64,000 bases of DNA from IMGVR_UViG_3300028840_001395:62001-126000, one strand, 5' to 3'; numbered from the stretch's first letter, positions 46,080 to 61,151 are shown. Notes: generated from the sequence alone by a model not told the origin. A program made the numbers and translations.

Positions 46080-46107
46080 CTCTGACGAAGTGAATAGCAA
46101 CGCGATT
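46080..46107 (-). repeat. 3' strand of the long-range stem closing array 2
   Basis: Inverted repeat of 61103-61129 (27 bp, one bulge). Confidence 0.85.
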
Positions 46108-46116
46108 CTGTGATGG

Positions 46117-46193
46117 TGGTCAGGGTGACTGGAATCGAACCAGCGACTTCCTGCGTCCAAGGCAGGTACTCTACCAGACTGAGCTACACCCTG
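46117..46193 (-). tRNA. tRNA-Pro(TGG)
   Basis: Loop CTTGGAC, CCA. Confidence 0.9.
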
Positions 46194-46194
46194 A

Positions 46195-46271
46195 TGGTGA
46201 CCCCGGCGGGAGTTGAACCCGCGCCTCCGGCTTGAAAGGCCAGCGTCCTAACCGTTAGACTGTACGGGGCC
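46195..46271 (-). tRNA. tRNA-Glu(TTC)
   Basis: Loop CTTTCAA, CCA. Confidence 0.85.
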
Positions 46272-46276
46272 GCGAA

Positions 46277-46355
46277 TGGTACTCCGGAGAGGACTTGAAC
46301 CTCCAACAGTCCCAGGTTCGTAGCCTGGCGCTCTATCCAGTTGAGCTACCGGAGC
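46277..46355 (-). tRNA. tRNA-Arg(ACG)
   Basis: Loop CTACGAA, CCA. Confidence 0.9.
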
Positions 46356-46367
46356 ATCGTATGAAGT

Positions 46368-46443
46368 TGGTACCCCCAGCAGGACTCGAACCTGCGACCT
46401 CGTGGTCCGCAACCACGCGCTCTTTCCTCTGAGCTATGGGGGT
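46368..46443 (-). tRNA. tRNA-Arg(GCG)
   Basis: Loop TTGCGGA, CCA. Confidence 0.85.
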
Positions 46444-46445
46444 AC

Positions 46446-46522
46446 TGGAACGACGGGTGAGAGTCGAACTCACATCCTCCTGGGGCACAACCAGGCGCTG
46501 CTTCCTACTGAGCTTCCGTCGC
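46446..46522 (-). tRNA. tRNA-His(GTG), U73
   Basis: Loop TTGTGCC, CCA. Confidence 0.75.
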
Positions 46523-46524
46523 AT

Positions 46525-46598
46525 TGGTCCTGGCGAGAAGAGTCGAACTTCTGTTTCCTGATCCACAGTCAGGCGTCCTACCACTAGACGACGCCAGG
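46525..46598 (-). tRNA. tRNA-His(GTG), A73, no G-1
   Basis: Loop CTGTGGA, CCA. Confidence 0.8.
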
Positions 46599-46602
46599 GA
46601 TG

Positions 46603-46905
46603 TCAGTGGCGGCGCTTCCGCCTTCGGCGCTCGCGGGGCAGCTTCGCCTTGATGCGCTTCCCCGGTCTGATCTTGCGGATGAAGACCAGCGCCTTCTGGA
46701 TCTGCGGGTGGGCCTGTAGTCCTTCGATGGTGTCAAGGCCCAGTGTCTCGTCCCGCAGCTCCTTGTTCGAGAACAAGGTGTGGATGGTCTTGTGGCACGC
46801 TGCACAGAGCAGGGCCGTGTCGAACCTGTCCTTGCCCCTCGTTTTCAGGTGGTGGTCCGACATCCGGTGCTGGGGGACATCTTGCTCGCACAGCGCACAG
46901 ATCAT
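46603..46905 (-). CDS. Small HNH-like protein
   Basis: CALC...DHHL...CAACHKTIH. Confidence 0.75.
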   Translation of the reverse strand: MICALCEQDVPQHRMSDHHLKTRGKDRFDTALLCAACHKTIHTLFSNKELRDETLGLDTIEGLQAHPQIQKALVFIRKIRPGKRIKAKLPRERRRRKRRH

Positions 46906-46974
46906 CTCACGATTCCTCCCGTCGTGCCTATTCTACTCCAACAGGGGCCACTCCGGGCCTCCTGCTTTCATTCT

Positions 46975-47051
46975 TGGTCGGGGTGACTGGATTTGAACCA
47001 GCGGCCTCCGCGTCCCGAACGCGGCGCTCCACCAGGCTGAGCTACACCCCG
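46975..47051 (-). tRNA. tRNA-Pro(CGG)
   Basis: Loop TTCGGGA, CCA. Confidence 0.92.
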
Positions 47052-47072
47052 ATCTGTGGTATAGTGGCGGTC

Positions 47073-47651
47073 ATGACAAAGCCCATCACGAAGAAGGAGA
47101 TCCGGGAAGTCGTCCAAGGCGTCCACGGAGAGGACATCCAGATCGAGCACGCCCCACAGGAGGAGGTGGTCGATCTGTCCGAAGAAATCACCACCATCCT
47201 GAAGGCCATCGGCTTCCCGACCGCCTGGGTGTCCGACGAGTCAACCCTCTGGGACTTCTGGTTCTCCCGCGACCCCGACGAGGTGCAGAAGGAAGAAGCC
47301 GCGCTCACCGAGACAGTCGGCTTCGAGGTGTCCATCAAGGACTACCTGGTGGACATCGCCCGGCGCATGAAGGGCCTCCCGCCTCGTCCCGAAGTCTGGA
47401 AGTTCCCCAAGGAGGTTGAGATCCTCTTGGCCATCGTGGACCGCGATGATGCGGTGGTCACAGACCAGACCACCTTCCGGGACTTCATGGACCCCGGAGA
47501 CCCCGAGGGCCTGGCCAGGATCTCCCGTCGCTGCAAGACGCTGGAGAAGCGGTATGAGTTCCTGGTCGATCACGACGACACCTTCCTCGATGTCGCCCGC
47601 AAGATGCGGAAGTTCCGCAACGAGCACCGGGCCAAGAGTGGTAGGCGGTAG
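47073..47651 (+). CDS. Hypothetical protein with an internal duplication, antisense to array 2
   Basis: Two units ending YLVDIARRMK / FLDVARKMR. Confidence 0.75.
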   Translation: MTKPITKKEIREVVQGVHGEDIQIEHAPQEEVVDLSEEITTILKAIGFPTAWVSDESTLWDFWFSRDPDEVQKEEAALTETVGFEVSIKDYLVDIARRMKGLPPRPEVWKFPKEVEILLAIVDRDDAVVTDQTTFRDFMDPGDPEGLARISRRCKTLEKRYEFLVDHDDTFLDVARKMRKFRNEHRAKSGRR

Positions 47652-47714
47652 GGGACTTGAACCCCTGACCTCCGCCTTGTAAGGGCGGCATTCTCCCAAC
47701 TGAACTAACCGCCT
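47639..47714 (-). tRNA. tRNA-Val(TAC)
   Basis: Loop CTTACAA, CCA. Confidence 0.92.
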
Positions 47715-47722
47715 ATCGAAGT

Positions 47723-47797
47723 TGGTGGGCCTGACTGGACTCGAACCAGCGACTTCTACCGTGTGAAGGTAGCACTCTCCCACTGAGTTACAGGCCC
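47723..47797 (-). tRNA. tRNA-Val(CAC)
   Basis: Loop TTCACAC, CCA. Confidence 0.9.
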
Positions 47798-47803
47798 GAA
47801 GAT

Positions 47804-47880
47804 TGGTCGGGGTGACTGGACTCGAACCAGCGACCTTCGGTCCCCCAGACCGACGCGCTACCAGGCTGCGCCACACCCCG
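47804..47880 (-). tRNA. tRNA-Pro(GGG)
   Basis: Loop CTGGGGG, CCA. Confidence 0.9.
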
Positions 47881-47884
47881 ATAT

Positions 47885-48505
47885 CTACTCCCCGAACAGG
47901 TCGAGGATGTCTCCAATGTCATCGTGTTTCGTGAAGTTCCGGCAGAAGGTCGCCCGGTGCAGAGGCGTCAACCCGTGTTCCCGGATGGCCTCGATGTGGC
48001 CCTTCGACCCGTAGCCCTTGTTGCCCTCCCAGCCGTACTGGGGATACTGCTTGGCCATCTGCACCATGTAGGCATCTCGCTCGACCTTGGCCACGATGCT
48101 CGCAGCCCCGATGATCCAGTCCTTCGCGTCACCCTTGACGATGAACTCGGTCGGGATGGGCCGGAAGTCCACCCCGATGGGCTTGCCGTCGATGCGGACA
48201 GCTTCGACCGGGAGATCGAGAGCTAGCAGACCCTCGATGGCCTCCCAGAAGCACTCCAAGAGGGCGGGGTTGATGCCCACCTCGTCCACCCTGGCAGCCG
48301 TTCGGATGCTGACCCGATGGTGGAGGCCCGGATGTTCAGTTATCGCCTTGTGGAGCCTCTCACGCTTCCTGGGGGTCAGCTTCTTGCTGTCCGTCACGCC
48401 CTCGATGGGGGCCATATCGGCGGGGGCCATCACAGCACAGACGTAGCACCCACCGGCCAGGGGGCCTCGCCCAACCTCGTCTGCACCGATGATGTAAGTG
48501 CTCAT
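47885..48505 (-). CDS. rnhB: Ribonuclease HII
   Basis: GADEVGRGPLAG, DSKKL, KGD...AASIVAKVERD, NKGY. Confidence 0.95.
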   Translation of the reverse strand: MSTYIIGADEVGRGPLAGGCYVCAVMAPADMAPIEGVTDSKKLTPRKRERLHKAITEHPGLHHRVSIRTAARVDEVGINPALLECFWEAIEGLLALDLPVEAVRIDGKPIGVDFRPIPTEFIVKGDAKDWIIGAASIVAKVERDAYMVQMAKQYPQYGWEGNKGYGSKGHIEAIREHGLTPLHRATFCRNFTKHDDIGDILDLFGE

Positions 48506-48533
48506 GCCCTATACTACCCTATCTCGGATGGGA

Positions 48534-48628
48534 TGGTAGCCCCGGAGGGAGTCGAACCCTCGGTGGAGCCCCTACGTCTCCGGCACGGTTTATAAGACCG
48601 CCGCTGTGACCGTTCAGCTTACGGGGCC
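48534..48628 (-). tRNA. tRNA-Ile(TAT) with long variable arm
   Basis: Loop CTTATAA, about 23-nt variable region, CCA. Confidence 0.75.
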
Positions 48629-49452
48629 AGCCCGTCCGCGAGGGCGAAGGTCTTGTCGGCCAGGTCGGGGTCGAGTCCCTTCATGGCCTCGGGGATGTCC
48701 TTCTGCTTGTAGCGGTCGGAGAAATGGGTCAAGACCAGCGCCTCGACCTGGGCCAACAGATGCTCCCGCACCCCGATCTGGAGCAGGTGCGTGTGGCCCC
48801 GGCTCTCCGCGAACTCCCCGGTGTGCTCGTTGGTCAGGAAGGTCGCCTCGGTGATAAGGATGCGGGCCTTCCGGATGCCGGAGATCCGGTCAAGGGTGCT
48901 GATACGGGTGTCCCCCGTGTACACGACCTCCAGGGTCTTGACCTCATCCGTGACCTCGACGCCCTCCTCCTGCCGGAGCCGTCCGATCTCCTTGCCAGGC
49001 AGGTCTGCGAACTCGGGCTTGAGCTTTCTCTTCGCCCGGAAGATGGCGTAGCCCTGCGACGGAACCGTGTGGTCAGTCGGGAACGCCGCCACCGACAGCC
49101 CCTTACCGAGCTTCATCTCTTCGTCGCCCGGAGCCAGGGGGAGCACGTCGCACTTGAAGCCGCCGTGCTGGAGAGGTTCCCACAGGGCGAACATCTGGTG
49201 GATGGGCTTGACCAGGTGAGGCGGCACGATGAAGCGGGAGGGCTTCATCCCCATCATGTTTCGGGTGAAGGCGTGCCGGACGATGCCCGCCATGTGGTCA
49301 ACGTGTCCGTGCGTGATGAGCACCGTTCGGATGCGCTGGGCCTCGCGGGGGCATACCCCCATGTCGAAGACCAGCTTGAAGTCGGGCATCCAGATGCAGG
49401 TTCCCAGGCCGCTGACGGACTCTCCTCGGATCTCGGTGTTCAGGATTCGCAT
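48619..49452 (-). CDS. rnz: Ribonuclease Z (MBL fold)
   Basis: THGHVDH, flexible arm KLKPEFADLPGKEI, TGDT, EAT, THFS.RY. Confidence 0.85.
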   Translation of the reverse strand: MRILNTEIRGESVSGLGTCIWMPDFKLVFDMGVCPREAQRIRTVLITHGHVDHMAGIVRHAFTRNMMGMKPSRFIVPPHLVKPIHQMFALWEPLQHGGFKCDVLPLAPGDEEMKLGKGLSVAAFPTDHTVPSQGYAIFRAKRKLKPEFADLPGKEIGRLRQEEGVEVTDEVKTLEVVYTGDTRISTLDRISGIRKARILITEATFLTNEHTGEFAESRGHTHLLQIGVREHLLAQVEALVLTHFSDRYKQKDIPEAMKGLDPDLADKTFALADGLAP

Positions 49453-49688
49453 GGCTCTTTTTCCTCCCGAGGCTCCATGCCTCACCTGTTCTTAGCAACC
49501 TCGCGCAACCTGGCGGGCTGCGGCGTCAGTGGAAGAACAGGTGTCCACCGAGACTACTCTATGAGAAGGAAAAGTAAGCGACCCCCTGCCCCGTTCCCGG
49601 TGCTCCGCTGGCGAGTCCTGGGTGGCGAGGCTTGTCCCCAGCGTGGTGGCCCTACCTCACTAAAGCCGTTCGCAGGGGGTCACGAAGT

Positions 49689-49762
49689 TGGAGACAGCGG
49701 TCGGATTTGAACCGACGATCAGGGGGTTGCAGCCCCTAGCCTTACCGCTTGGCTACGCTGTC
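49689..49762 (-). tRNA. tRNA-Cys(GCA)
   Basis: Loop CTGCAAC, U73, CCA. Confidence 0.9.
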
Positions 49763-49770
49763 ATGTTCCT

Positions 49771-49845
49771 TGGTCGCTATGGAGGGACTCGAACCCCCGA
49801 CACAGTGGATATGAGCCACTTGCTCTGCCTCTGAGCTACATAGCG
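49771..49845 (-). tRNA. tRNA(CAT), elongator Met or Ile2
   Basis: Loop CTCATAT, CCA. Confidence 0.85.
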
Positions 49846-49847
49846 AT

Positions 49848-49921
49848 TGGCTGAGGCATGAGGACTCGAACCTCAACTTCCGGGGCCAGAACCCGGCGTC
49901 CTGCCATTAGACGATGCCTCA
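49848..49921 (-). tRNA. tRNA-Gln(CTG)
   Basis: Loop TTCTGGC, U1-A72, CCA. Confidence 0.85.
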
Positions 49922-49945
49922 GTAGAAATCAGGAGAGGGCAGGAG

Positions 49946-50281
49946 CTACACGCCACCCAGTTCCTTCTGGGCCTCGTGGATCCCCTTCATGATGTGACGC
50001 GGGAACTGGATCTTCCGGCTCTTGAACAAGCCCCTCCCCTTGTCAACCAGTTCGGAGTCACCCCGGCTCGACCCTGGGCGGCGGGAGTTCTCATCCCACA
50101 TGAAGACCGTCCAGGTGCCGTCGTTGACCAGGCCGACCTTGACCAACACCCCGGCATCCTTGTCGCGGATCTCGATGGTATCGAACATCTTCGCGGTCTT
50201 CTTGAGCAGGGGCACCAGATGCTTCCTGGTCTCGGGCACTTCCCCTGCCAGCTTGATGAGGGCCTCGCGGAGTTGAGACAT
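49946..50281 (-). CDS. Hypothetical protein with LIKLA..PE.R.HL.PLLKKTA N-terminal motif
   Basis: SD AGGAGG. Confidence 0.75.
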   Translation of the reverse strand: MSQLREALIKLAGEVPETRKHLVPLLKKTAKMFDTIEIRDKDAGVLVKVGLVNDGTWTVFMWDENSRRPGSSRGDSELVDKGRGLFKSRKIQFPRHIMKGIHEAQKELGGV

Positions 50282-50327
50282 CAGACACCTCCTTGTCTCT
50301 ACTCCAGGGTGACCATAGACGAAAAAT

Positions 50328-50403
50328 TGGCTGGGGCAGAGGGATTTGAACCCCCGATCACAGGGTCAGAGCCTGCTGCCTTACCAGACTTGGCTATGCC
50401 CCA
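50328..50403 (-). tRNA. tRNA-Gln(CTG)
   Basis: Loop CTCTGAC, CCA. Confidence 0.9.
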
Positions 50404-50408
50404 GCGGA

Positions 50409-50674
50409 TGGTGCGGGTGGTGGGAGTCGAACCCACAAGACCAGAACGTCTCTTATCGGGACTCACGCTTCCCTGTGGGGGGATGAGGTTCCCCAACCCC
50501 TGCCATTACTGACAGCGGCCCCAACCCGGTGCTTCTGAAGCCTAGAGACCGTGCCCCGTCCGGGAACGCCACAACGCAGCTTTTTACCTTCCGGTAGCAC
50601 CCTGGCCCCTCAATCACGAGGTTTCCGGTTTCACCTTGGTTTTCCGGTTCCGTTGCCTGTTAGGTCACACCCGC
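50409..50674 (-). ncRNA. 266-nt RNA with tRNA acceptor/T arm and a large insert in place of the anticodon loop
   Basis: GCGGGTG/CACCCGC-A-CCA, GTGGG-TTCGACT-CCCAC, ACCGGAA/TTCTGGT stem. Confidence 0.6.
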
Positions 50675-50914
50675 ATTCGTGTCCACGCTCTGACGAGCCT
50701 CGATGCCTTCCTGCTCCAGCTTCAGGTGCTTCCTGATGTAGCGCATGAACAGAAGAGCCTTGTCCTCGGCCAGAAAGGTCGCGGTCCCCACGTCATCGAT
50801 GGGAACCGGGAACTCGAACCCGCATTCGGTGCGGTACCAGAGGTTGCTGTCGCAGTAGAACGCGAAGCGAACCTTCTTCCCTGACTTCACCATCTCTGTG
50901 AGTCGCTGTGCCAT
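50660..50914 (-). CDS. Conserved phage hypothetical protein
   Basis: LWYRTECGFEFPVPIDDVGTATFLAEDKALLFMRYIRK. Confidence 0.8.
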   Translation of the reverse strand: MAQRLTEMVKSGKKVRFAFYCDSNLWYRTECGFEFPVPIDDVGTATFLAEDKALLFMRYIRKHLKLEQEGIEARQSVDTNAGVT

Positions 50915-50934
50915 TTCTGGCCTCCTCCCGAAGT

Positions 50935-51009
50935 TGGCAGGGGCGGAGGGAATTGAACCCATCATCTCAGGAATCAAAGGCCTGTGTCCTACCGTTGAAC
51001 GACACCCCC
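50935..51009 (-). tRNA. tRNA-Gln(TTG)
   Basis: Loop CTTTGAT, CCA. Confidence 0.75.
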
Positions 51010-51052
51010 ACTGGGCAGGTCGTCAACTTTGACGACCGCCAGATTTGACGAC

Positions 51053-51128
51053 TGGTGGAGCTGAGGGGAATCGAACCCCTGACCTCGGCATTGCGAACGC
51101 CGCGCTCTCCCAACTGAGCTACAGCCCC
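51053..51128 (-). tRNA. tRNA-Ala(CGC)
   Basis: G3.U70, loop TTCGCAA. Confidence 0.92.
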
Positions 51129-51141
51129 ATCTATGTGTCCG

Positions 51142-51217
51142 TGGTGGAGCTAGCCGGGATCGAACCGGCGACCCCCTGCTTGCAAAGCAGGCGCTCTCCC
51201 AACTGAGCTATAGCCCC
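51142..51217 (-). tRNA. tRNA-Ala(TGC)
   Basis: G3.U70, loop TTTGCAA. Confidence 0.93.
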
Positions 51218-51230
51218 ACGGATTGATTGT

Positions 51231-51306
51231 TGGAGCGGACGACCAGGATCGAACTGGCGACCTCCTGCTTGGCAAGCAGGTGCTCTACCGGCTGAGCTAC
51301 GTCCGC
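51231..51306 (-). tRNA. tRNA-Gly(GCC)
   Basis: Loop TTGCCAA, U73. Confidence 0.92.
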
Positions 51307-51926
51307 ATCTTGTCCCACCCCTCGGCTGCGGACGGGCTAACCGCCACGCACCTTTTCAGGTGAGCCACTTCCTCGGATGACCACACATAACAGGTGTCCG
51401 CGTAGAGGTCATACCCGACGATGAAGTCGAAGTCTGCCTTCTGGTATCGAACCGCCTTGTTGTGGCCTTGGACACACTTGAGAGACACAGAGGGAAGACC
51501 CTTCCCCGAGGCATGTGCCCACTTGACCTGCACCTTCAAGATTCGACCTGTCTCTGGAATCTCCACTACCCAGTCGGCCTTGTCTCCATCGAAAGGCGAC
51601 CCAAAGACATTGAACCCACAGACGGTCATCCTAAACAAGACGGCTGCCTCAGCGATCTTCGCCTTCTGAAGGCGCGAGGCATTGGGGTTCATCATCCGAT
51701 AAAGAGGGGACTCTGCCCCGCGTGACTTTTTGGGGTGCCCCCCTCGTTGATTTTCCTTACGCTTGGCTGCCTGCTCACTCTTTGTCAAAGGATGGGGCTT
51801 GAGCCATCCACTCAGAGAACCTTTCGAGGCCCCTGTCCGTTGGTGGATTTCTCGCAGAGACAAGCCTTCCTCAACTCGGAGCCGAATGCACTCCGCCTTC
51901 AATTTAGGATTAGACTTTCCGCGCAA
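51297..51926 (-). CDS. HTH + PD-(D/E)xK endonuclease (group I intron-associated type)
   Basis: LSLREIHQRTGASKGSLSGW; D...LKVQVK...DFDFIVGY. Confidence 0.8.
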   Translation of the reverse strand: MRGKSNPKLKAECIRLRVEEGLSLREIHQRTGASKGSLSGWLKPHPLTKSEQAAKRKENQRGGHPKKSRGAESPLYRMMNPNASRLQKAKIAEAAVLFRMTVCGFNVFGSPFDGDKADWVVEIPETGRILKVQVKWAHASGKGLPSVSLKCVQGHNKAVRYQKADFDFIVGYDLYADTCYVWSSEEVAHLKRCVAVSPSAAEGWDKMRT

Positions 51927-51981
51927 AATGAACCTCCAATCTCCACAAGGAGTATAGCACTTGAAGGTTCACAGGTAAAGC

Positions 51982-52057
51982 TGGTGTGGATGACGGGGTA
52001 TGATCCCGCAACCCCTGCCCTGGCAAGGCAGTACTCTTCCAGTTGAGCTACATCCAC
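51982..52057 (-). tRNA. tRNA-Gly(GCC), atypical (A73, T loop ATCATAC)
   Basis: Loop TTGCCAG, CCA. Confidence 0.65.
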
Positions 52058-52061
52058 AGAT

Positions 52062-52184
52062 GGTGGGGAGAGACGGTGTTGCCGACTGTCAGTAGGGCTA
52101 CGGGAATCGAACCCGCATCTCCGGGCCTCACCCGGCGTGTTGTCCATTACACCAAGTCCTTGTCGGCGGCGTCCCGTGCCCACC
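52062..52184 (-). ncRNA. tRNA-like core with extended terminal stem (1)
   Basis: D and T arms, 5-nt anticodon loop, flanks pair GGTGGG/CCCACC and GCCGAC/GTCGGC. Confidence 0.6.
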
Positions 52185-52297
52185 GAGAACAAGATGGAGA
52201 GGGCCGTTCCAGAACTGCACCCCCAGAACCCAGGAAGGCCCGCGCCCGCCAGGGTAGGAGGACACAGCCCGACAGGCCCGTGTCCATCTGATTTACT

Positions 52298-52373
52298 TGG
52301 AGCGAGTGACCGGGATCGAACCGGCGACCTTCTGGATGGGAACCAGATGCTCTGCCAACTGAGCTACACTCGC
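52298..52373 (-). tRNA. tRNA-Gly(CCC)
   Basis: Loop TTCCCAT, U73. Confidence 0.9.
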
Positions 52374-52377
52374 AACG

Positions 52378-52506
52378 GGTCGAGGCAAGGTGTGTGTCGC
52401 GTACAGGTGAAGAAAACGGGTCTCGAACCCGCAACCTTCGGCTTGATAAGGCCGACGCTCAACCATTTGAGCTATCTCTTCTGAAACGACACCGCAGTCC
52501 TCGACC
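52378..52506 (-). ncRNA. tRNA-like core with extended terminal stem (2)
   Basis: 8-nt loop CTTATCAA, no CCA, flanks pair GGTCGAGG/CCTCGACC and GTGTCG/CGACAC. Confidence 0.65.
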
Positions 52507-54728: not shown

Positions 54729-54804
54729 TGGAGCGGGCGACGAGAATCGAACTCGCAACCCTCGGCTTGGAAGGCCGATGCTCTAGCCGTTGAGCTACGC
54801 CCGC
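54729..54804 (-). tRNA. tRNA-Gly(TCC)
   Basis: Loop CTTCCAA, U73. Confidence 0.92.
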
Positions 54805-54811
54805 TTGGAAG

Positions 54812-55216
54812 CTATCCCTTGAACTCGTAATCAGAGGCCCATCGAATGTTCTTCTTCTGACCCTGCCGGGCTGCCTCCAGGCGCAGCCGCGCACATTTGA
54901 CGCCAACTTCATCCACAGGAACGAGATAGACCTTATCGAGTCCTGGGGCATAGACTGCGAAGATGTCAGCCTCGCCCCGGTAAGTCCGGGTTTTCTTCGT
55001 ATTCCAGTTGTTTGAACAGGTGGGAAACTGGATGTATCCAGGAAAGACCTGAGCAGTCTTGCACTGGACTCGGGTGAACTTCCCTCCCTCGTCCAACACC
55101 ATGTCGTATCTCTGGTTGTCCCCGAAGGGGGTGAGGACAACCTTCCCAGCCCGGAGAAAGGCGGCAAGAATCTGCCCCTCTGACCTTTCCCCAACTGCTT
55201 TGGGATTCATGTCCAT
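54812..55216 (-). CDS. PD-(D/E)xK endonuclease (group I intron-associated type)
   Basis: GERSE...PFGDNQRYDMV...RVQCKT...ADIFAVY. Confidence 0.85.
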   Translation of the reverse strand: MDMNPKAVGERSEGQILAAFLRAGKVVLTPFGDNQRYDMVLDEGGKFTRVQCKTAQVFPGYIQFPTCSNNWNTKKTRTYRGEADIFAVYAPGLDKVYLVPVDEVGVKCARLRLEAARQGQKKNIRWASDYEFKG

Positions 55217-55263
55217 GTGAACCTCCAAAGAGAAGGTATCACATTCCCAAGGTTATATCTAGG

Positions 55264-55341
55264 TGGTGAGCCGGGCGGGACTCGAACCCGCGACCGCCTG
55301 ATTAAAAGTCAGATGCTCTAATCCAACTGAGCTACCGGCCC
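55264..55341 (-). tRNA. tRNA-Lys(TTT)
   Basis: Loop CTTTTAA, CCA. Confidence 0.92.
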
Positions 55342-55342
55342 G

Positions 55343-55418
55343 TGGTGGGCCTGACAGGAATCGAACCTGCGTCTCTCCGCTTAAAAGGCGGCAGCAACCC
55401 AACTTTTGCTACAGACCC
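55343..55418 (-). tRNA. tRNA-Lys(TTT)
   Basis: Loop CTTTTAA, CCA. Confidence 0.85.
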
Positions 55419-55490
55419 ACGGAGAAGTCACCGCGAGCCCTGCGTTTCAGCCGAGTCATGATTGACCTCCTTGGGTCTGTGGAGTGTATC

Positions 55491-55566
55491 TGGTGCCCCC
55501 AGCAGGAGTCGAACCTGCGGCCATCCGCTTAGGAGGCGGGTGCTCTATCCTCTGAGCTATGGAGGC
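55491..55566 (-). tRNA. tRNA-Arg(CCT)
   Basis: Loop CTCCTAA, CCA. Confidence 0.9.
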
Positions 55567-55573
55567 AGGGAGT

Positions 55574-56701
55574 CTAGGGCGGAGGATTTGGGTCAGAGAA
55601 TACGGTGAAATATCCAAGACCAGCTAGCACGAGTTCACCCTTGGTGATGTATGCCTTGATGAGCGCGTTGGACGTCGAATCTATGTTCAAGGAAAGCGCC
55701 CCACCGAGGGTCAACGTCCCAGGGAGGGCTGGTGGCTCCCGGCCCACGAATGACGATGCGGTCATGAAACGGGAAGACCCATCCTCGTTGATGGTGACAT
55801 CCCCGCCCAGCGACGACGTAATTATCTGTGCCATCTCTCCGATGGAAATGAAGTCCTTTGCGTAGATGATAGCGTTGTTCAAAACCACCCCACCAGCGGC
55901 GGGGGCGTCGATGCTGTTGATCAACATCCGGGAGTCAAAGACCGACAGTGTTGACCAACCCGGCAGATTCCGGTTTGCCTCGTAGGGGGCGGCACAGATG
56001 ATGTCGGATGTGTAGTTGGAAAGGAACCCGCCCGTGGCGATGTAGATCTCATACGGGGTGTCAACGTGAGGGAGAAGGATATCCCCCTGGAGTCCCGCAT
56101 TCACAAGGTTCAGGATGACCTTTCCCAACGGGGCAGTGTCCCCGACGATGCTCCCGAAAACCACGGACTCTGCCAAGGTGAGCTTGCGCCCGTAGTCGGC
56201 CCCAGGAGCCGGAGGCCACGCGGGTTCTCCCGTGAATGTGATATTCCCGGCAATGAACATGCCGCTGAATGAGGTTCCTCCAAGGTGCGGCCCCGGAGTG
56301 CCGTAGCTCCTGATGTTCAAGGTGGACTGGTTGATAGGCGGAGCCGAGCCGTTGGGCACGTTGAACGTGATATCCCCTCCAGGCCCCCCGATGCTGCTTG
56401 GGTCTCCGAGAAACACCGTACCCAGCGTGTAGATGTTGAATACACCCGCTGTCGAAATGGTGATGGACTCGTCGTAGATCCCCGGATAGACCCAGAGAGT
56501 CTGAATCCAGGTCGTAGGATCACCCGCGTCATACACGGGGAGCGCAGCTATGGCCTCCGTGATGGTTCGGAATGGGGCGACCCAGGAGCCATTCGCTTCG
56601 GGCGTCCCTGCGGGAGCCGGGCCAGGGGCCACGACCTTCATCTGCTCGTTGGGCGCTCCCGTGATGAGGTCTGCAAGCTCTGCCGGGATGTTGTAGGACA
56701 T
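55574..56701 (-). CDS. Putative beta-helix (pectin-lyase-like) protein, paralog of 56711-58033
   Basis: NGSWVAPFRTITEAI...VYPGIYDE. Confidence 0.6.
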   Translation of the reverse strand: MSYNIPAELADLITGAPNEQMKVVAPGPAPAGTPEANGSWVAPFRTITEAIAALPVYDAGDPTTWIQTLWVYPGIYDESITISTAGVFNIYTLGTVFLGDPSSIGGPGGDITFNVPNGSAPPINQSTLNIRSYGTPGPHLGGTSFSGMFIAGNITFTGEPAWPPAPGADYGRKLTLAESVVFGSIVGDTAPLGKVILNLVNAGLQGDILLPHVDTPYEIYIATGGFLSNYTSDIICAAPYEANRNLPGWSTLSVFDSRMLINSIDAPAAGGVVLNNAIIYAKDFISIGEMAQIITSSLGGDVTINEDGSSRFMTASSFVGREPPALPGTLTLGGALSLNIDSTSNALIKAYITKGELVLAGLGYFTVFSDPNPPP

Positions 56702-56710
56702 CGTGACCCC

Positions 56711-58033
56711 CTACGGGATGACCGCGTCGTTGAGGAGATTCGTCCCTGCGGGGAACGCCGACCCCGCGAGCTTCGTCATCGAGTTCGTGGCCAAGTCCAC
56801 GTAGAAGTTACCAGGAACCGTGAACGTGACCACCCCTGTCACCCGGCAGTCCAGGAAGTATGCCTCTGCGGAGGTGGCGTCCAGCGTATCGTTGAACCTG
56901 CATCCGTGGACAAGCCCCACACTCCCGAAGTCCACACCACCACTGAACAGGCAACCCTTGACATCGGGGTTCCCGGAGTCGTTCTCGAAGTTGGCCTGGA
57001 AGATACAGTCCTCGATCAAGGTGATGTCATGCACATCGACGTTCCCGTTGAACTCGCAACGGCGCATCTTGTCGGCATCGTCCGCCACGGTAACCGAGAA
57101 CCCGAACACGCTGTCGGTGAAGTGGGCGTCCTGGAGAGTCACACTGCCCCCCAAGAGAGAATCCTGATAGACTCCCTCACGGGCGGTCACGGCACCCTCG
57201 AATCTGCTCTGCTCTATGGCGATCATGTCGGACGCCTCTGGTGCCCAAACGGAAGCCGTCTGCATGGGAAGGCCATTCGGGGTGAATGTCCCCTGCCTCA
57301 CGTCCGTTCGCTCGAAGTTGAGTTGACGCTCACCCCCGACCTCCGACCCGCCGACAAAGACCCCATCACCAATTTCGCTATTCTCGAAGTACCATTTGTA
57401 GGTTACCTCGCGTCCGAACTGGATGGCATCACATCGACTCTGCACAAGAGCCATGCCGAGCTGCCCAGCCCACTCGGTCGGCTGGCCTGCGTCCTTGCCC
57501 ACGATGTTTCCGCCGATGTTGGTATTCCGGAACCAGCAGAAGCGGTCAACGGGGTCTCCATCGATGATTACATCCCCAGAGATATCGAAGAGCGTGATCT
57601 CTGTGTTCCCTACCTGTGGCATCGGGAGAACAATGAGGGAGGCCGGAACGTAATTCCCAGGAGGAGCCCCCGTGATCTGGGTGGGGGCGTCCTTGTCCCA
57701 GGTGACCGACTTGGGATCACCCTGCTCCCCGATACGGGCAGCACCCACCGTGTAGAAGAGCATGATCTTCGACTTGGTGATTGTGACATCCTCGTTGTAG
57801 ATGCCCGACATGATCCAGATCTGCTCAAACCAGGTGTTCTGGTCAGCCCCATCCACGGGAGCCATTGCATCTACGGCAGCCTGGATTGTCCGATAGGGAT
57901 TGGCCCATGTCCCGTCAGCAGGCTCCCCGGCCCCAGCGCCTCCGGCGGGGTCGTTGCTCACGACCTTGATGGCAGAGGGGAGCGCCCCGCTCTGGAGCAT
58001 ATCGAGAAGTGACTGCGGGATGTTGTAGGACAT
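56711..58033 (-). CDS. Putative beta-helix (pectin-lyase-like) protein
   Basis: DGTWANPYRTIQAAV...IMSGIYNE; C.F.G.V repeats. Confidence 0.65.
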   Translation of the reverse strand: MSYNIPQSLLDMLQSGALPSAIKVVSNDPAGGAGAGEPADGTWANPYRTIQAAVDAMAPVDGADQNTWFEQIWIMSGIYNEDVTITKSKIMLFYTVGAARIGEQGDPKSVTWDKDAPTQITGAPPGNYVPASLIVLPMPQVGNTEITLFDISGDVIIDGDPVDRFCWFRNTNIGGNIVGKDAGQPTEWAGQLGMALVQSRCDAIQFGREVTYKWYFENSEIGDGVFVGGSEVGGERQLNFERTDVRQGTFTPNGLPMQTASVWAPEASDMIAIEQSRFEGAVTAREGVYQDSLLGGSVTLQDAHFTDSVFGFSVTVADDADKMRRCEFNGNVDVHDITLIEDCIFQANFENDSGNPDVKGCLFSGGVDFGSVGLVHGCRFNDTLDATSAEAYFLDCRVTGVVTFTVPGNFYVDLATNSMTKLAGSAFPAGTNLLNDAVIP

Positions 58034-58077
58034 GGACGCCTCCTTGGCCCTACACTGTACCCCGGATAGGCAGATTA

Positions 58078-58154
58078 TGGCACCCCCGGAGGGACTCGAA
58101 CCCCCACCGTCCTGATTAGAAGTCAGGCATCCTCTCCAATTAGACCACGGAGGC
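58078..58154 (-). tRNA. tRNA-Arg(TCT)
   Basis: Loop CTTCTAA, CCA. Confidence 0.88.
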
Positions 58155-58211
58155 ACAGGGGCCATCCAGGGTCGCGGGTGAACGCGCCTCGCTGGACGGC
58201 AGGACGGAACT

Positions 58212-58288
58212 TGGTGGGCCTGACTGGGCTTGAACCAGCGAACCTCCGCCGTGTCGAGGCGGCGCTCTCCCAACTGAGCTACAGGCCC
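58212..58288 (-). tRNA. tRNA-Val(GAC), C at position 33
   Basis: Loop TCGACAC, CCA. Confidence 0.85.
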
Positions 58289-58295
58289 ATGATTT

Positions 58296-59102
58296 TTAGG
58301 AATTGATGACTTCTCCGACCGCCCTGACGACTTTGTTCAGGTCACAGGCGTAGAGGCCAGCACAGGACAGACACCCAACTTCGAGGACTCTCCACTCACC
58401 GCTCTCGGTCTGGCAGGTGTCCAAGACCCACATCGGGTCAGGACTGAAATCCGTCTTGTCCAAGAACTCACGGGCAATGTGGAACGCCTCATTGCCCGGC
58501 TCCACGACCTCGTGCTTGAGGGTGCTCTTGACCTTGTAGAGACTCCCTGTGACGACCTCCCGGCCCTTCACGATGAACCGGAACTCACGGGCGATGTTCG
58601 TGGCCGGGGCCACGACAATCAGCGTGTCCGGTGGGATGTCGCTGTATCGCTCGATGAACTCGATGTCCTGCCCCAGCGTCTTGCGGCACATCACGATGCC
58701 CGTGAAGGTCTTGAGCCCACTGCTGGGCCGGACGAAGAAACACTCATGTTCCCCGCGCCCAAACCTCTCGAAGAGATGGGCTGCGTCATCCCGGAGTTGC
58801 CGGTAGGGAATCATGGTGCATTCGTCGTTGAGCAGCAGTCCCTTGAAGGCCGGGTAGTAGGACGAGCACTCGTAGGCTTCTACCGTGTGAAACACATTGC
58901 AGGTGGGCGAGTCCTTCATGACCCGCAGCGAGAACTCCAGGCTACCAAAGAGGAAGTCCTGGGGTCCGAAGCGGCTGAAGTCTCCTCCACCGAAGGGGAT
59001 GTAGTCCACGATCTCGTAGGTCATCCCCGCCCTGGTGATAGCGGCTTCGAGCCCCTGTTGGTTCTCCTCGAAGGTGTGGTTTTCCAAGATCCAGTTCAAC
59101 AT
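58296..59102 (-). CDS. ATP-grasp domain protein (R2K/DUF4343-like)
   Basis: FVRPSSGLKTFTG, EFRFIV, VLD...VLEVG..SCAGLY. Confidence 0.8.
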   Translation of the reverse strand: MLNWILENHTFEENQQGLEAAITRAGMTYEIVDYIPFGGGDFSRFGPQDFLFGSLEFSLRVMKDSPTCNVFHTVEAYECSSYYPAFKGLLLNDECTMIPYRQLRDDAAHLFERFGRGEHECFFVRPSSGLKTFTGIVMCRKTLGQDIEFIERYSDIPPDTLIVVAPATNIAREFRFIVKGREVVTGSLYKVKSTLKHEVVEPGNEAFHIAREFLDKTDFSPDPMWVLDTCQTESGEWRVLEVGCLSCAGLYACDLNKVVRAVGEVINS

Positions 59103-59554
59103 GGGAGGCCCATTTCTTGTAGAATCTTGACCCGAAGGTCGCCTCGCTCGATAGCCGACTTCCGCCGATGGCATTTTGCACAGCGGACCTCGCATTTCGC
59201 AAGCTCCGCTTCGACTCGGTGCCACGCAGGTAGCCGATGGTAGATGGTTGACAGACCCATGACCTTCTTACCTCGCACATGGTCGAAATCAAGGACGAGG
59301 GGGTCTGTCTCTCCACAGTCCACACACGGATGAGCGAGAAGATACGCCACGATGCGGCGCGTGTACAACTCCCTTCGGGCAGCGTTGTTCTTTCCGACGT
59401 TCTTCCGATGGGATGTCTTGTTCTTCTTGTACCAGGACTTGCGGTACTCCGCCTGGCACCGTTTGCACATGGACTGGTAGCCGTCCTTCTTGCTCTTGTT
59501 GGTGTTGAACTCCTTGAGAGGAAGGGAACGCCCACATTTTCCACAAGTCTTCAT
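59096..59554 (-). CDS. HNH endonuclease
   Basis: CGKC...CKRC; CVDCGETDPLVLDFDH...CAKCH. Confidence 0.85.
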   Translation of the reverse strand: MKTCGKCGRSLPLKEFNTNKSKKDGYQSMCKRCQAEYRKSWYKKNKTSHRKNVGKNNAARRELYTRRIVAYLLAHPCVDCGETDPLVLDFDHVRGKKVMGLSTIYHRLPAWHRVEAELAKCEVRCAKCHRRKSAIERGDLRVKILQEMGLPC

Positions 59555-59606
59555 ACGGGGAGTGTACCAAGGGCGGCTCCTAAAAGCAATCACCCTTTCA
59601 AATTCA

Positions 59607-59682
59607 TGGTGGGCCGAGAAGGATTTGAACCTTCAACCTTCAGGGTAAGAGCCTGCTGCACTATCCGTTGTGCTACCGACCC
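59607..59682 (-). tRNA. tRNA-Lys(CTT)
   Basis: Loop CTCTTAC, CCA. Confidence 0.9.
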
Positions 59683-59695
59683 ATGAATGAAAATG

Positions 59696-59771
59696 TGGTA
59701 GGCCCGGAGGGAGTCGAACCCTCAACTTCCCGGTTAAGAGCCGGGTACTCTGCCAGTTGAGCTACGGACCC
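59696..59771 (-). tRNA. tRNA-Lys(CTT)
   Basis: Loop CTCTTAA, CCA. Confidence 0.92.
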
Positions 59772-59799
59772 ACATGCTCGTGAAGGACGCCGTTTTAGA

Positions 59800-59929
59800 C
59801 AGGATTCGGGAGAGAGGCCCGGTCATCGGTGGGGGTCGAACCCACGACCTCCGGGTTGAAAAAGCCGTCAAGCCGTCCCGACGCTCTGCCGACTGAGCTA
59901 CGACTACGTGGACTTCATCCCGTCCCCTG
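59800..59929 (-). ncRNA. tRNA-like core with extended terminal stem (3)
   Basis: Canonical D and T arms, 21-nt anticodon loop, no CCA, flanks pair CAGG/CCTG and CGGGA/TCCCG. Confidence 0.6.
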
Positions 59930-60066
59930 AATGACTACTGACCTGAACCGTTCCAAGGTTCCCCACTGGCACCCTCGCGGGGGCGGAAAGGTAGGCTTGA
60001 CGGCCCCACCCCCAGGCACCAGGCTTCGCCAGGGTTCAGTCCAGGCGTTCATCCGGCGATAGAACT

Positions 60067-60143
60067 TGGTCGGGAAGACAGGATTTGAACCTGCGACCGC
60101 TCGGCCCCCAGCCGAGTGCTCTACCAGACTGAGCTACTTCCCG
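60067..60143 (-). tRNA. tRNA-Pro(GGG)
   Basis: Loop CTGGGGG, CCA. Confidence 0.9.
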
Positions 60144-60152
60144 AATGTCTCT

Positions 60153-60229
60153 TGGCGGGAATGACGGGAGTTGAACCCGCTTCCTCTGGCGTGACAGGCC
60201 AGCGCCTCCTCCACTTCGGCCTCATCCCC
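60153..60229 (-). tRNA. tRNA-Asp(GTC)
   Basis: Loop CTGTCAC, G73. Confidence 0.9.
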
Positions 60230-60238
60230 TTGCGTTCT

Positions 60239-60315
60239 TGGTCGGGGCGACTGGATTTGAACCAGCGACCTCTCGGATCCGAACCGAGTACTCTTCCAGA
60301 CTGAGCTACACCCCG
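60239..60315 (-). tRNA. tRNA-Pro(CGG)
   Basis: Loop TTCGGAT, CCA. Confidence 0.9.
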
Positions 60316-60325
60316 AAAATGACTG

Positions 60326-60403
60326 TGGCAGGGACGACGGGACTCGAACCCGCGACCTCCTGGGCGACAACCAGGTGTCCTAAACCAACTAGACCACGCC
60401 CCT
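60326..60403 (-). tRNA. tRNA-Asp(GTC)
   Basis: Loop TTGTCGC, G73. Confidence 0.85.
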
Positions 60404-60412
60404 GCGGCGTGT

Positions 60413-60487
60413 TGGCAGGAGTGACGGGAATCGAACCCGCCTCACTCGGGAGACAGCCGAGCTGCATCACCAGATGCACACACCCCT
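60413..60487 (-). tRNA. tRNA-Asp(GTC)
   Basis: Loop CTGTCTC, G73. Confidence 0.8.
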
Positions 60488-60706
60488 ATCGAATGGACGG
60501 ATGGGAAGGGTGTGACCCCTCCATCCCCGTGTCGCGTGGCTGGCCGTGTCACAGCCCTTTGGACTCGCGCCACAGGGACCCACATCTACGGGCACCCCAT
60601 CGTCGGTTACCCCGTCAGGAGTCTCACCTGCTCCTCCTCTCCCGTCCTTCCTCTGTCCGAGGCGACTTGGGTCTGGTGTGCATCTACACCACGGGGTCAT
60701 TGATCT

Positions 60707-60781
60707 TGGCTCCTCGGGAGGGAATCGAACCCCCGACACACTGGTTAACAGCCAGCCGTTCTACCGCTGAACTACCGAGGA
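60707..60781 (-). tRNA. tRNA-Asn(GTT)
   Basis: Loop CTGTTAA, CCA. Confidence 0.92.
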
Positions 60782-60793
60782 ACATTTGACTTT

Positions 60794-60868
60794 TGGCTTA
60801 CCGGACGGGACTCGAACCCGCGCGCTTTACGTTAACAACGTAGTGCTCTGCCGCTGAGCTACCGGCAA
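60794..60868 (-). tRNA. tRNA-Asn(GTT)
   Basis: Loop TTGTTAA, CCA. Confidence 0.88.
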
Positions 60869-61102
60869 GACAGACGATTCGTGTCCCTTGAGCTACCGGG
60901 AGGAGGGCCTTGGCCGCAACCCCAGAGGACTCTGCGTGGATGGCCTGCGGGGACTTCGCAGATTTCCGGGCGGGTGGACTCACCGCTCTGGGGGTCGCAC
61001 GCTGCCGAACCACAACCGCGCACCGAAGGCGTCCCTCTGGTCGGGGACGCCGAGTTCATGAAGCCGGGGGCCGGTTGGGAGCCGACCCCCGGCGATTTTT
61101 GC

Positions 61103-61151
61103 AATCGCGTTGCTATTCACTTGTCAGAGACCGTGGCCCACTCTCAGGCCC
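61103..61151 (-). promoter_or_regulatory. Hairpin + boxA-like element + 5' strand of long-range stem (array 2)
   Basis: GGGCCTGAGAGTGGGCC...CTCTGACAAGTGAATAG, matches 23167-23205. Confidence 0.65.

Follow-up and report, generated by a model that had tools for sequence, protein, structure and literature searches.

Why should a 15-kb array of phage tRNA genes begin and end with sequences that are complementary to one another? This question was addressed in a 64,000-nt window (positions 62001–126000 of IMGVR_UViG_3300028840_001395; all coordinates below are counted from the first letter of this window, which is the whole stretch of DNA analysed) belonging to a 435,804-bp phage genome. An earlier note had described a 27-bp inverted repeat closing the array, and this observation was confirmed. 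The + strand at 46080–46107 (28 nt) equals the reverse complement of 61103–61129 (27 nt), apart from one extra G at 46087, giving a 20-nt exact block (46088–46107/61103–61122) and a 7-nt exact block (46080–46086/61123–61129). On the minus strand, which is the tRNA-sense strand, the leader arm reads CTCTGACAAGTGAATAGCAACGCGATT and the trailer arm is its complement with one bulged C. None of 100 dinucleotide-preserving shuffles gave such a pair, and among 21,788 same-strand windows of the whole genome, the best RNA partner of the leader arm is its own trailer (−50.7 kcal/mol; next unrelated partner, −33.3; mean, −16.6; SD, 3.6). The trailer arm begins 9 nt past tRNA-Pro(tgg) (46117–46193), and the leader arm ends 234 nt before tRNA-Asn (60794–60868). 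Between the two arms (array 2; 46117–60868, minus strand), ARAGORN called 44 tRNA-like genes, 42 of which have a normal anticodon, whereas the note had counted about 41. They are interspersed with about 14–16 ORFs with coding-like GC3, all on the minus strand, including genes for RNase HII (47885–48505), an MBL-fold hydrolase (48619–49485), a cytidylyltransferase-like protein (54173–54679), and an ATP-grasp protein (58296–59225).

The claim of the note that another array has its own matching pair also holds. Array 1 (23246–27124, plus strand; 22 tRNAs and 2 ORFs) is bracketed by a leader arm at 23195–23217 and a trailer arm at 27134–27156, which form a 19-nt core with one U.G and up to 23 pairs with flanks (−43.8 kcal/mol); the trailer is again the best partner genome-wide. 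The leaders of the two arrays share 40 nt (23166–23205 on the plus strand and 61113–61152 on the minus strand; 90%), and this leader block is invariant from GGGCCTGAGAGTGGG to TGACAAGTGAATAG in five aligned leaders. After the common 10-nt core AAGTGAATAG, however, the distal parts of the arms differ (GATTTCCCG vs. CAACGCGATT), and each trailer matches its own leader. In array 2, the trailer also complements 7 nt of the invariant leader block, which the array 1 trailer does not. The trailers therefore follow the leaders rather than a common protein-site consensus.

The arms are conserved in three related phages found in metagenomes (relatives A, B, and C), in which nearby proteins are only 48–80% identical and the adjacent spacers and promoter spacers are scrambled. 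The leader arm of array 2 is identical in relatives A and B, and its trailer arm is kept in relatives A, B, and C with one to three changes. The leader arm of array 1 is identical in the related sequence L009, and its trailer arm is identical in L007 and L009. In relative C, two ORFs were inserted between the last tRNA and the trailer arm, yet the arm stays at the end of the unit. The same unpaired C is kept in all four trailer lineages, indicating that the arms are not being homogenized by DNA recombination. The natural covariation proposed in the note exists only between the two arrays: within each array, the relatives show invariant leader arms, one A-to-G change giving a U.G pair, and no compensatory double change. 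The leader arm is invariant in six leader sequences, which suggests a sequence-specific constraint beyond pairing.

The region upstream of each leader arm has a common organization, consisting of predicted promoters, a small ORF, and a terminator with an alternative antiterminator. In array 2 (all features on the minus strand), a phage-type promoter-like motif (GGTCTTAC-N16-GTAGTCTGG) lies at 61969–62001 and matches the multi-copy genome motif G(G/T)CTTA(T/C)-N16-GAGTAGTCTAGG; its counterpart before array 1 is at about 22896–22927 (+). It is followed by a sigma-70-like promoter, P2 (61844–61871; TTGACA-N16-TATCAT, 11/12 matches), which is homologous, with its flanks, to P1 of array 1 (22941–22968, +) and is conserved in relative B (contig L029). 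Small ORF 2 (61640–61792; 50 codons), which was also called as a gene, is a candidate leader peptide and is conserved in relatives A (L033) and B (L029 and L036–L038); 33% of its codons end in A/T against a background of 16.7%. An intrinsic terminator (61577–61610) comprises an 8-bp GC stem, which covaries (G.U/G-C/A-U) in relatives, and a U9 tract (U6 in relative B). In array 1 (plus strand), the candidate leader peptide is encoded by small ORF 1 (22997–23098; 33 codons; MNRLFTTTSTTT...), which is conserved in L009, and is followed by a terminator-like hairpin (23124–23160) with a 15-bp GC stem but only a weak U-tract (UUUCGU).

Small ORF 1 holds cognate codons for 14 of the 17 array 1 anticodons (P of about 1e-4) and for only 7 of the 29 array 2 anticodons, whereas small ORF 2 holds Watson–Crick cognate codons for 22 of the 29 array 2 anticodons (P of about 0.001) and for 7 of the 17 array 1 anticodons. 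The same holds in relatives, although the enrichment of the amino-acid set is significant only for small ORF 1. Mutually exclusive 1:2, 2:3 (antiterminator), and 3:4 (terminator) helices can be drawn for both regions. The 5′ half of the array 2 terminator can instead pair with the end of small ORF 2 (61655–61640), and that of the array 1 hairpin with the end of small ORF 1 (23074–23094), which can in turn pair with the Thr/Ser codons at 23009–23026. The regulatory codons in segment 1 are ACC ACC ACC TCA in array 1 and CGC CAG CAC CAG in array 2. With segment 1 masked, the minimum-energy fold switches to 2:3 for array 2 but not for array 1. A search of both control regions against Rfam 15 gave no match at or above the gathering score and only one sub-threshold chance hit. 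These regions resemble the leader-peptide attenuators of the trp, thr, his, leu, and pheST type, but the controlled genes are tRNAs rather than amino-acid biosynthesis or synthetase genes, the peptide samples most anticodons of its own array instead of repeating one amino acid, and the setting is a phage.

Between the terminator and the leader block of array 2, an endonuclease VII-family (His-Me finger; Pfam PF02945) gene (61166–61573, minus strand) has been inserted in this phage only. It is absent at this site in relatives A and B, where the terminator abuts the leader block, and its best homologue is only 44–47% identical. Just 3′ of the leader arm lies a strong GC hairpin (61063–61093, minus strand), which shows a compensatory G-C to C-G flip in L033 and L037 and reads as a terminator on the + strand; it is preceded by a small hairpin (61092–61108) that can sequester the last 6 nt of the arm. 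At the other end, a phage-type promoter-like motif (46049–46079, minus strand; GCTTAT-N17-GTAGGATAG) for a downstream HNH endonuclease gene starts at the last base of the trailer arm. The HNH gene itself (45464–46012, minus strand) directly follows the trailer arm and keeps this position in relatives A, B, and C. The trailer arm of array 1 similarly lies directly before the promoter-like site TTCACT-N17-TATAGT of the gene at 27239–28192.

The best explanation, held tentatively with a probability of about 0.45, is that each array is an attenuator-controlled operon whose 5′ leader and 3′ trailer pair as RNA on the tRNA-sense strand. In this view, transcription would start at the conserved upstream promoters, pass the small ORF and the terminator, run through the leader block that ends in the leader arm, and reach the trailer arm after the last tRNA. 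The two arms would then form a duplex of about two helical turns, either within one precursor or between the released leader and the trailer, marking the end of the operon. Its most likely role is as a substrate for a double-strand-specific nuclease of the host (RNase III type), as in rRNA operons, separating the tRNA precursor from the leader mRNA and from read-through into the next gene. What the sequences themselves establish is the complementarity, its position, its uniqueness in the genome, its conservation, and the absence of an inverted DNA form from the assemblies and relatives examined; that the arms pair in RNA, that the duplex is cleaved, what such cleavage achieves, and that read-through depends on translation of the small ORFs are inferred.

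The interpretation given in the note, that one transcript spans about 41 tRNAs and about 15 ORFs, is only partly supported. The complementarity, the single bulge, and the match of each leader to its own trailer are confirmed and are far beyond chance. RNA-level pairing is the best-supported reading, as the arms are conserved in relatives and neither a DNA inversion nor transposon ends fit the data. Both arms would have to lie on the sense RNA, because only 28 nt (a hairpin) separate the leader arm from the first tRNA in array 1, leaving no room for a promoter, and no terminator separates the last tRNA from the trailer arm. In array 1, both non-Watson–Crick positions are U.G on the sense strand, and the sense duplex is 3–7 kcal/mol better than the antisense one in this phage and in L009. 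In array 2, by contrast, the wobble evidence is strand-neutral, and in relative B the A.C mismatch of the sense strand would be a U.G on the antisense strand. In local folds, the leader arms lie mostly unpaired between conserved hairpins that themselves show compensatory changes, so the leader behaves as a structured RNA, and the duplex length (20–27 bp) is what RNase III-type enzymes need. A single transcript is plausible, as promoters lie upstream, no strong terminator lies inside the array, and all genes are on one strand, but it is not shown: no RNA run holds this phage, and phage-type promoter-like boxes occur inside both arrays, including at least two in array 2 (about 48541 and 46968, minus strand). 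RNase P would probably detach the leader long before a trailer 4–15 kb downstream is made, so a helix in cis may never form and the pairing may occur in trans. The phage encodes no recognizable RNase III, and two unrelated phages with tRNA arrays lack such arms, indicating that the arms are not needed for tRNA arrays in general.

Other readings of the arms appear less likely. They may be DNA sites, with an asymmetric protein-binding site centred on the shared core (C)AAGTGAATAG placed in opposite orientation at the two ends of each array and working as a boundary or insulator, a loop anchor, or a regulator of the array promoter region and of the promoter that follows the trailer. The invariance of the core and of the whole leader block in both arrays and all relatives fits sequence-specific recognition, both trailer arms abut or overlap the promoter-like site of the next gene, and in relative C the arm stays with the HNH promoter rather than with the last tRNA. 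However, a common protein site explains neither why the distal 9–10 nt differ completely between the arrays yet are complementary within each, nor why the array 2 trailer extends into leader-specific sequence. The trailers also lack the other 30 nt of the leader block, and no gene for a DNA-binding protein is linked to the arms; this reading is considered unlikely. Somewhat less likely still is a purely trans-acting feedback device, in which the trailer fragment released by tRNA processing pairs with the leader of new transcripts, or the released leader pairs with read-through RNA, setting the stability or expression of the leader mRNA, the array, or the HNH gene. The same complementarity supports it, the distance between the arms and fast RNase P cleavage would make an encounter in trans more realistic than a cis helix, and the position of the trailer arm just upstream of the HNH promoter means that only read-through transcripts carry it, but no stabilizing hairpin is evident on the short trailer fragment and direct RNA evidence is lacking.

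The remaining readings at the DNA level are very unlikely. An invertible switch turning the array on and off relative to its promoter is suggested by the inverted repeat around a discrete segment and by a 1003-aa topoisomerase IB/tyrosine-recombinase-like protein encoded near array 1. Inversion between the repeats had been named beforehand as a point to check, and contigs from three metagenome runs cross the trailer arm in the reference orientation with no differences and no joint at the arm, although assemblies can hide rare forms. All eight contigs from relatives that carry an arm have the same orientation. The arms show no internal dyad symmetry, the homology of the leaders continues for 30 nt outside the repeat, the conserved unpaired C argues against exchange between the arms, and Pfam and PHROGs scans of the ORFs within and beside array 2 revealed no recombinase gene. 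The arms could alternatively be terminal inverted repeats of a mobile tRNA cassette or neutral relics of an inverted duplication, as homing-type endonuclease genes (HNH and Endo VII) sit just outside both arms, but there is no target-site duplication (the flanks of array 2 are ...AATAAGC/ACCGTGG...), no transposase was found, and leader homology again extends beyond the repeat. In addition, the Endo VII gene is a recent insertion absent from relatives that already have the arms, the arms are under purifying selection while neighbouring non-coding DNA is not, and the arrays sit at the same place in all relatives.

In bacterial rRNA operons, complementary sequences lying 5′ and 3′ of stable-RNA genes on one transcript (the boxB-boxA-boxC leader and the spacer after 16S, and likewise for 23S) form an RNase III processing stem of about two turns with a bulge. 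Here, similarly, the arm follows a conserved leader block comprising a hairpin and a single-stranded conserved stretch, downstream of strong predicted promoters and before a long untranslated, highly structured RNA. The bracket, however, encloses 22–44 tRNAs plus protein genes over 4–15 kb rather than one rRNA of 1.5–3 kb, the tRNAs can be cut out independently by RNase P/Z so that the stem is not needed to release them, and no boxA-like sequence match was found. In regulatory spacer fragments of tRNA precursors, such as the 3′ external transcribed spacer of the Escherichia coli glyW-cysT-leuZ operon, which acts as an sRNA sponge, a non-tRNA part of the transcript also works through base pairing, but here the partner would be the operon's own leader rather than a trans-encoded sRNA. 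Invertible segments (Hin/Gin/Cin and shufflons) likewise have short flanking inverted repeats (about 26–34 bp), but here there is no adjacent invertase, there are no dyad-symmetric half-sites, and there is no inverted isoform in three assemblies or in any relative; the segment is also 15 kb. In the tRNA gene cluster of phage T4, the homing endonuclease SegB (PMC2330249) provides a parallel for the free-standing endonuclease genes at the trailer (HNH) and leader (Endo VII); the T4 cluster has no reported leader–trailer complement, and this parallel explains the Endo VII insertion but not the arms.

A more far-reaching and rather unlikely possibility, which would be of considerable interest if true, is that the two arrays are self-regulating tRNA operons of a new design. 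The codons of the leader peptide would form a ‘test strip’ for the array's own anticodons and gate transcription by attenuation, so that the array is made when those tRNAs run short, for example after host tRNA depletion or cleavage by defence nucleases. A conserved rrn-like leader block would travel with the transcript, and pairing of the trailer arm with the leader arm would then close the unit, either through a double-strand cut or by stripping a leader-bound anti-termination signal so that the polymerase stops being protected after the last tRNA. Because each of the two large tRNA gene clusters starts and ends with short sequences that can pair with each other as RNA, and is preceded by a tiny gene that looks like a sensor for the very tRNAs that the cluster supplies, this arrangement may represent a new way for a virus to control and process its own tRNA supply.

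The window covers bases 62001-126000 of a virus record that comprises 435,804 bp, carries direct terminal repeats and is rated 100% complete, indicating a huge phage. In total, 67 tRNA-like genes and a tmRNA were identified by ARAGORN in the window, and only four more odd calls were obtained elsewhere in the genome. Of the latter, one at 241943-242033 (-) has the anticodon CTA (labelled Pyl) and is a possible amber suppressor, and three further odd tRNA-like calls lie at 409728-412950. The genes in the window form two arrays. Array 1 (23246-27124, + strand) contains 22 tRNAs and two ORFs and is followed by a tmRNA with its own promoter-like motif, whereas array 2 (46117-60868, - strand) contains 44 calls, of which 42 have a normal anticodon. 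Two tRNA-like genes in array 2 (52406-52481 and 59821-59907, -) have abnormal anticodon loops (4-nt 'tatc' and 2-nt 'cg'), and there is also a short 70-nt tRNA-Leu(gag) call at 52092-52161 (-); these may be degenerate or non-canonical tRNAs. About 15 ORFs with coding-like GC3, all on the - strand, are interspersed in array 2, including those for RNase HII, an MBL-fold hydrolase, a cytidylyltransferase-like protein and an ATP-grasp protein. Other repeats in the window include a low-complexity GC-rich tandem-like repeat (nine imperfect copies of about 52 nt) at 34405-34792 (-), within an 872-aa ORF (33335-35953), and a 125-nt direct repeat (9729-9853 and 10752-10876) whose copies are 83% identical and 1023 nt apart.

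The complementarity between the two ends of array 2 described in the earlier note was confirmed. The sequence at 46080-46107 (+) is the reverse complement of 61103-61129 with one extra base (G46087), giving 20 + 7 exact positions, and no dinucleotide-preserving shuffle gave such a pair. In a scan of all 21,788 same-strand windows of the genome, the best RNA partner of the leader arm was its own trailer (-50.7 kcal/mol; next unrelated, -33.3; mean, -16.6; sd, 3.6). Duplex prediction on long leader and trailer windows was uninformative in this GC-rich genome, and arm-only scans and counts of the longest complement were therefore used instead. The trailer arm starts 9 nt after the last tRNA, and the leader arm ends 234 nt before the first tRNA. 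The claim of the note that array 1 has its own matching pair is also correct: 23195-23217 pairs with 27134-27156 (a 19-nt core with one U.G, up to 23 pairs), and this is again the best partner genome-wide (-43.8 against -32.2). The two leaders share a 40-nt block. After the common core AAGTGAATAG, the arms continue with unrelated sequences (GATTTCCCG vs CAACGCGATT), and each trailer complements its own leader. Trailer 2 additionally complements 7 nt of the invariant leader block, on the other side of one unpaired C, whereas trailer 1 does not.

The two control regions are homologous well beyond the arms. Each contains, in order, a phage-type promoter-like motif, a sigma-70-like promoter (TTGACA-N16-TATCCT / TATCAT) with conserved flanks, a small ORF with a ribosome-binding site, a GC-rich terminator hairpin, the 40-nt leader block ending in the arm, one or two strong hairpins, and the first tRNA. 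The first of these belongs to a multi-copy family of the genome, G(G/T)CTTA(T/C)-N16-GAGTAGTCTAGG, or more broadly G(G/T)CTTA(T/C)-N16-18-(GAGTAGTCTAGG / GTAGTATAGG), which occurs in the window at 25888 and 28635 (+), at 46079, 48541 and 62001 (-), and at 35951-36202. The copies of this phage-specific motif account for most long inverted 'repeats' elsewhere in the genome, and before both arrays it sits in tandem with the sigma-70-like promoters. An initially considered promoter class, TTGRCY-N12-TATAG, gave only three genome hits and was not retained. A sigma-70 promoter inside the shared leader block was rejected because, although TTGACA/CTGACA is present, no conserved -10 follows at 16-18 nt in either array or in any relative. 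The arm core was likewise rejected as the -10 box of the phage-type promoter; it partially resembles GAGTAGTATAGG, but there is no -35-like GGCTTAC at the right distance.

In array 2 of this phage, an Endonuclease VII-family gene (61573-61166, -) is cleanly inserted between the T-tract of the terminator and the leader block, and it is probably a homing-type endonuclease cassette. Relatives A and B lack it, and there the T-tract of the terminator abuts the leader block. In array 1, only a 28-nt hairpin separates the arm from the first tRNA, and the arm must therefore be part of any transcript that includes the 5' side of that tRNA. No terminator lies between either last tRNA and its trailer arm. 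On the antisense strand of array 2 (61063-61100, + strand reading), the leader hairpin followed by GATTTTTGC reads as a good intrinsic terminator placed exactly at the inner edge of the leader arm. It could stop antisense transcription coming out of array 2, although no antisense promoter was identified. An HNH endonuclease gene (45464-46012, -) sits directly after the trailer arm and keeps this position in relatives A, B and C, and the unrelated phage Rctr197k also has an HNH gene right after a tRNA array (5747-6295 of contig L039).

No close relatives were found in INPHARED phages or IMG/VR by DNA 17-mers, three protein queries, one alignment query or the arm pattern; the two 17-mer hits (sequences L005 and L006) are unrelated coding DNA. 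The 90% clusters of the flanking proteins hold only this phage, and distant homologues of these proteins (on L015, L016 and L021) have no tRNA arrays nearby. A search through Endonuclease VII homologues did not lead to the leaders of relatives, as this gene, being an insertion, has no close homologue. Metagenome contigs of at least three related phages (relatives A, B and C) were, however, recovered through flanking proteins and through the arm pattern; a first pattern scan of metagenomes found nothing, whereas a second one, using the arm itself, found the leaders and trailers of the relatives plus five chance hits. Relative B holds the whole of array 1 on one contig (L009), in which the leader and trailer arms are identical to those in this phage, including the U.G position, while the spacers next to them differ and the neighbouring 317-aa protein is 66% identical. 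For array 2, the leader arm is identical in relative A (contig L033) and in four contigs of relative B (L025, L029, L037 and L038), whereas the upstream 100-aa protein is only 48-55% identical. The trailer arms of relatives A, B and C differ from that of this phage in three ways: this phage has one extra T; relatives A and C have one A-to-G change, which gives U.G against the unchanged leader of A; and relative C has one terminal G-to-C change. In all four lineages one C stays unpaired, as a bulge in this phage and as an A.C mismatch in the others. In relative C, two ORFs have been inserted between the last tRNA and the arm, yet the arm stays at the end of the unit, just before the promoter-like motif of the positionally conserved HNH gene. 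Thus, the arms are under strong purifying selection. No compensatory double change was found within an array, and the only covariation is between the two arrays.

The small ORFs at 22997-23098 (+) and 61792-61640 (-), which precede the terminators at 23124-23160 and 61610-61577, respectively, look like leader-peptide attenuators. In both control regions, the minimum-energy fold pairs a segment inside the small ORF with the 3' end of the ORF (1:2) and forms the terminator (3:4), whereas the 3' end of the ORF can alternatively pair with the 5' half of the terminator (2:3). The predicted energies of the 1:2, 2:3 and 3:4 helices are -18.5, -24.1 and -36.4 kcal/mol, respectively, in array 1 and -16.9, -24.4 and -21.6 kcal/mol in array 2. 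Masking segment 1, as a stalled ribosome would, switches the array 2 fold to the antiterminator, but in array 1 the terminator stays thermodynamically favoured, and its U-tract is weak. The alternative helices are conserved in relatives. The array 2 element is conserved in six sequences from three lineages, and one terminator pair varies G.U / G-C / A-U in a way compatible with both 2:3 and 3:4. Segment 1 is ACC ACC ACC TCA (Thr Thr Thr Ser) in array 1 and CGC CAG CAC CAG (Arg Gln His Gln) in array 2. Small ORF 1 contains Watson-Crick cognate codons for 14 of the 17 anticodons of array 1 (p about 1e-4 against the codon usage of the phage) and few for array 2 (7/29), and small ORF 2 contains cognate codons for 22 of the 29 anticodons of array 2 (p about 0.001) and few for array 1 (7/17). 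The ORFs of the relatives behave the same way. A third of the codons of small ORF 2 end in A/T, in a genome where 16.7% do. At the amino-acid level, only small ORF 1 is significantly enriched (27/32, p = 6e-7; small ORF 2, p = 0.2). As inferred from sequence, this is the logic of trp/thr/his attenuators applied to a tRNA operon, for which no precedent was found in the literature searched or in Rfam.

The most likely mechanism, to which we tentatively assign a probability of about 0.45 for the RNA duplex as stated, is as follows. Transcription from the upstream promoters would read through the attenuator when ribosomes stall on codons served by the array, and the transcript would then carry the conserved leader block and arm. 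After the last tRNA, the trailer arm would be made and would pair with the leader arm, in cis or in trans, to form a duplex of about two turns with one conserved irregularity. The duplex is most simply a target for a host double-strand-specific RNase, and such a cut would detach the leader mRNA and separate the tRNA precursor from read-through into the next gene, leaving ends next to stable hairpins. The closest model is the leader-spacer stem of rRNA operons. The sequence relationships, their conservation and the exclusion of DNA inversion come from the analysis itself, whereas the RNA pairing, its cleavage and the attenuation response are inferred. No RNA run was found for this phage, and it has no recognizable RNase III. 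RNase P would probably free the leader long before the trailer is made, and pairing may therefore be in trans. The proposal of the earlier note is thus only partly supported: its RNA stem is the best available reading, but its corollary of a single transcript is unproven, and phage-type promoter-like boxes occur inside both arrays (25888, +; 48541 and about 46968, -).

Pairing on the sense strand is favoured by array 1, in which both non-canonical positions are U.G on this strand and the sense duplex is 3-7 kcal/mol better than the antisense one. Array 2 gives no strand information, because the A.C of relative B would be U.G on the other strand. The arms are predicted to be largely unpaired between hairpins, and these hairpins show compensatory changes (G-C to C-G at 61093-61063 in L033 and L037; C-G to U-A at 23213-23244 in L009), so that the leader behaves as structured RNA. 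The invariance of the leader arm, however, suggests a sequence-specific reader as well as pairing. A DNA site for a shared binding protein appears unlikely, as it would not explain the array-specific distal complementarity, although it is the strongest of the alternatives, and a feedback by RNA acting purely in trans is considered slightly less likely still.

Inversion, mobile-element ends and relics are together regarded as improbable. Contigs of three metagenome runs (two probably the source, one independent) cross the trailer arm in the reference orientation with no differences and no joint there, and every contig of a relative has the same orientation. Contigs of two of these runs (X2 and X3) both break at 45780-45809, inside the HNH gene, although the third (X1) runs through, which may reflect strain microdiversity at the endonuclease gene. 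The arms have no dyad symmetry, no recombinase gene lies in or beside array 2, and the conserved unpaired C shows that the arms are not being homogenized. A 1003-aa protein with a eukaryotic-type topoisomerase IB catalytic core (PF01028) and a weak tyrosine-recombinase signal is encoded at 19025-22036 (-), 1.1 kb from the array 1 control region. Transposon ends are disfavoured because there is no target-site duplication and no transposase, the leader homology runs 30 nt outside the repeat, and synteny is fixed in the relatives.

The complementary arms are real, non-random, conserved and not explained by any catalogued element. Two unrelated phages with tRNA arrays (Rctr197k and phiSHEF13) have no such arms, so this is a lineage-specific device. 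Both underlying principles are established; what differs in this locus is that the processing-stem principle would be applied to multi-tRNA operons and that these are preceded by a putative leader-peptide attenuator of unusual design. Huge phages carry dozens of tRNA genes for reasons that are debated (codon supply, or escape from tRNA-targeting defences), and for the transcription, regulation and processing of such arrays, which are essentially unknown, the locus offers a concrete and testable architecture: a promoter, a candidate codon-sampling leader-peptide attenuator, a conserved leader with an arm, the tRNAs, and a complementary trailer arm, a layout that is conserved in at least three related phages. 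If the pairing and the attenuator work as inferred, a virus would sense shortage of exactly the tRNAs it can supply and would process the resulting giant precursor by rRNA-operon logic, which bears on phage takeover of translation, on counter-defence against tRNA nucleases, and on the design of synthetic multi-tRNA operons.
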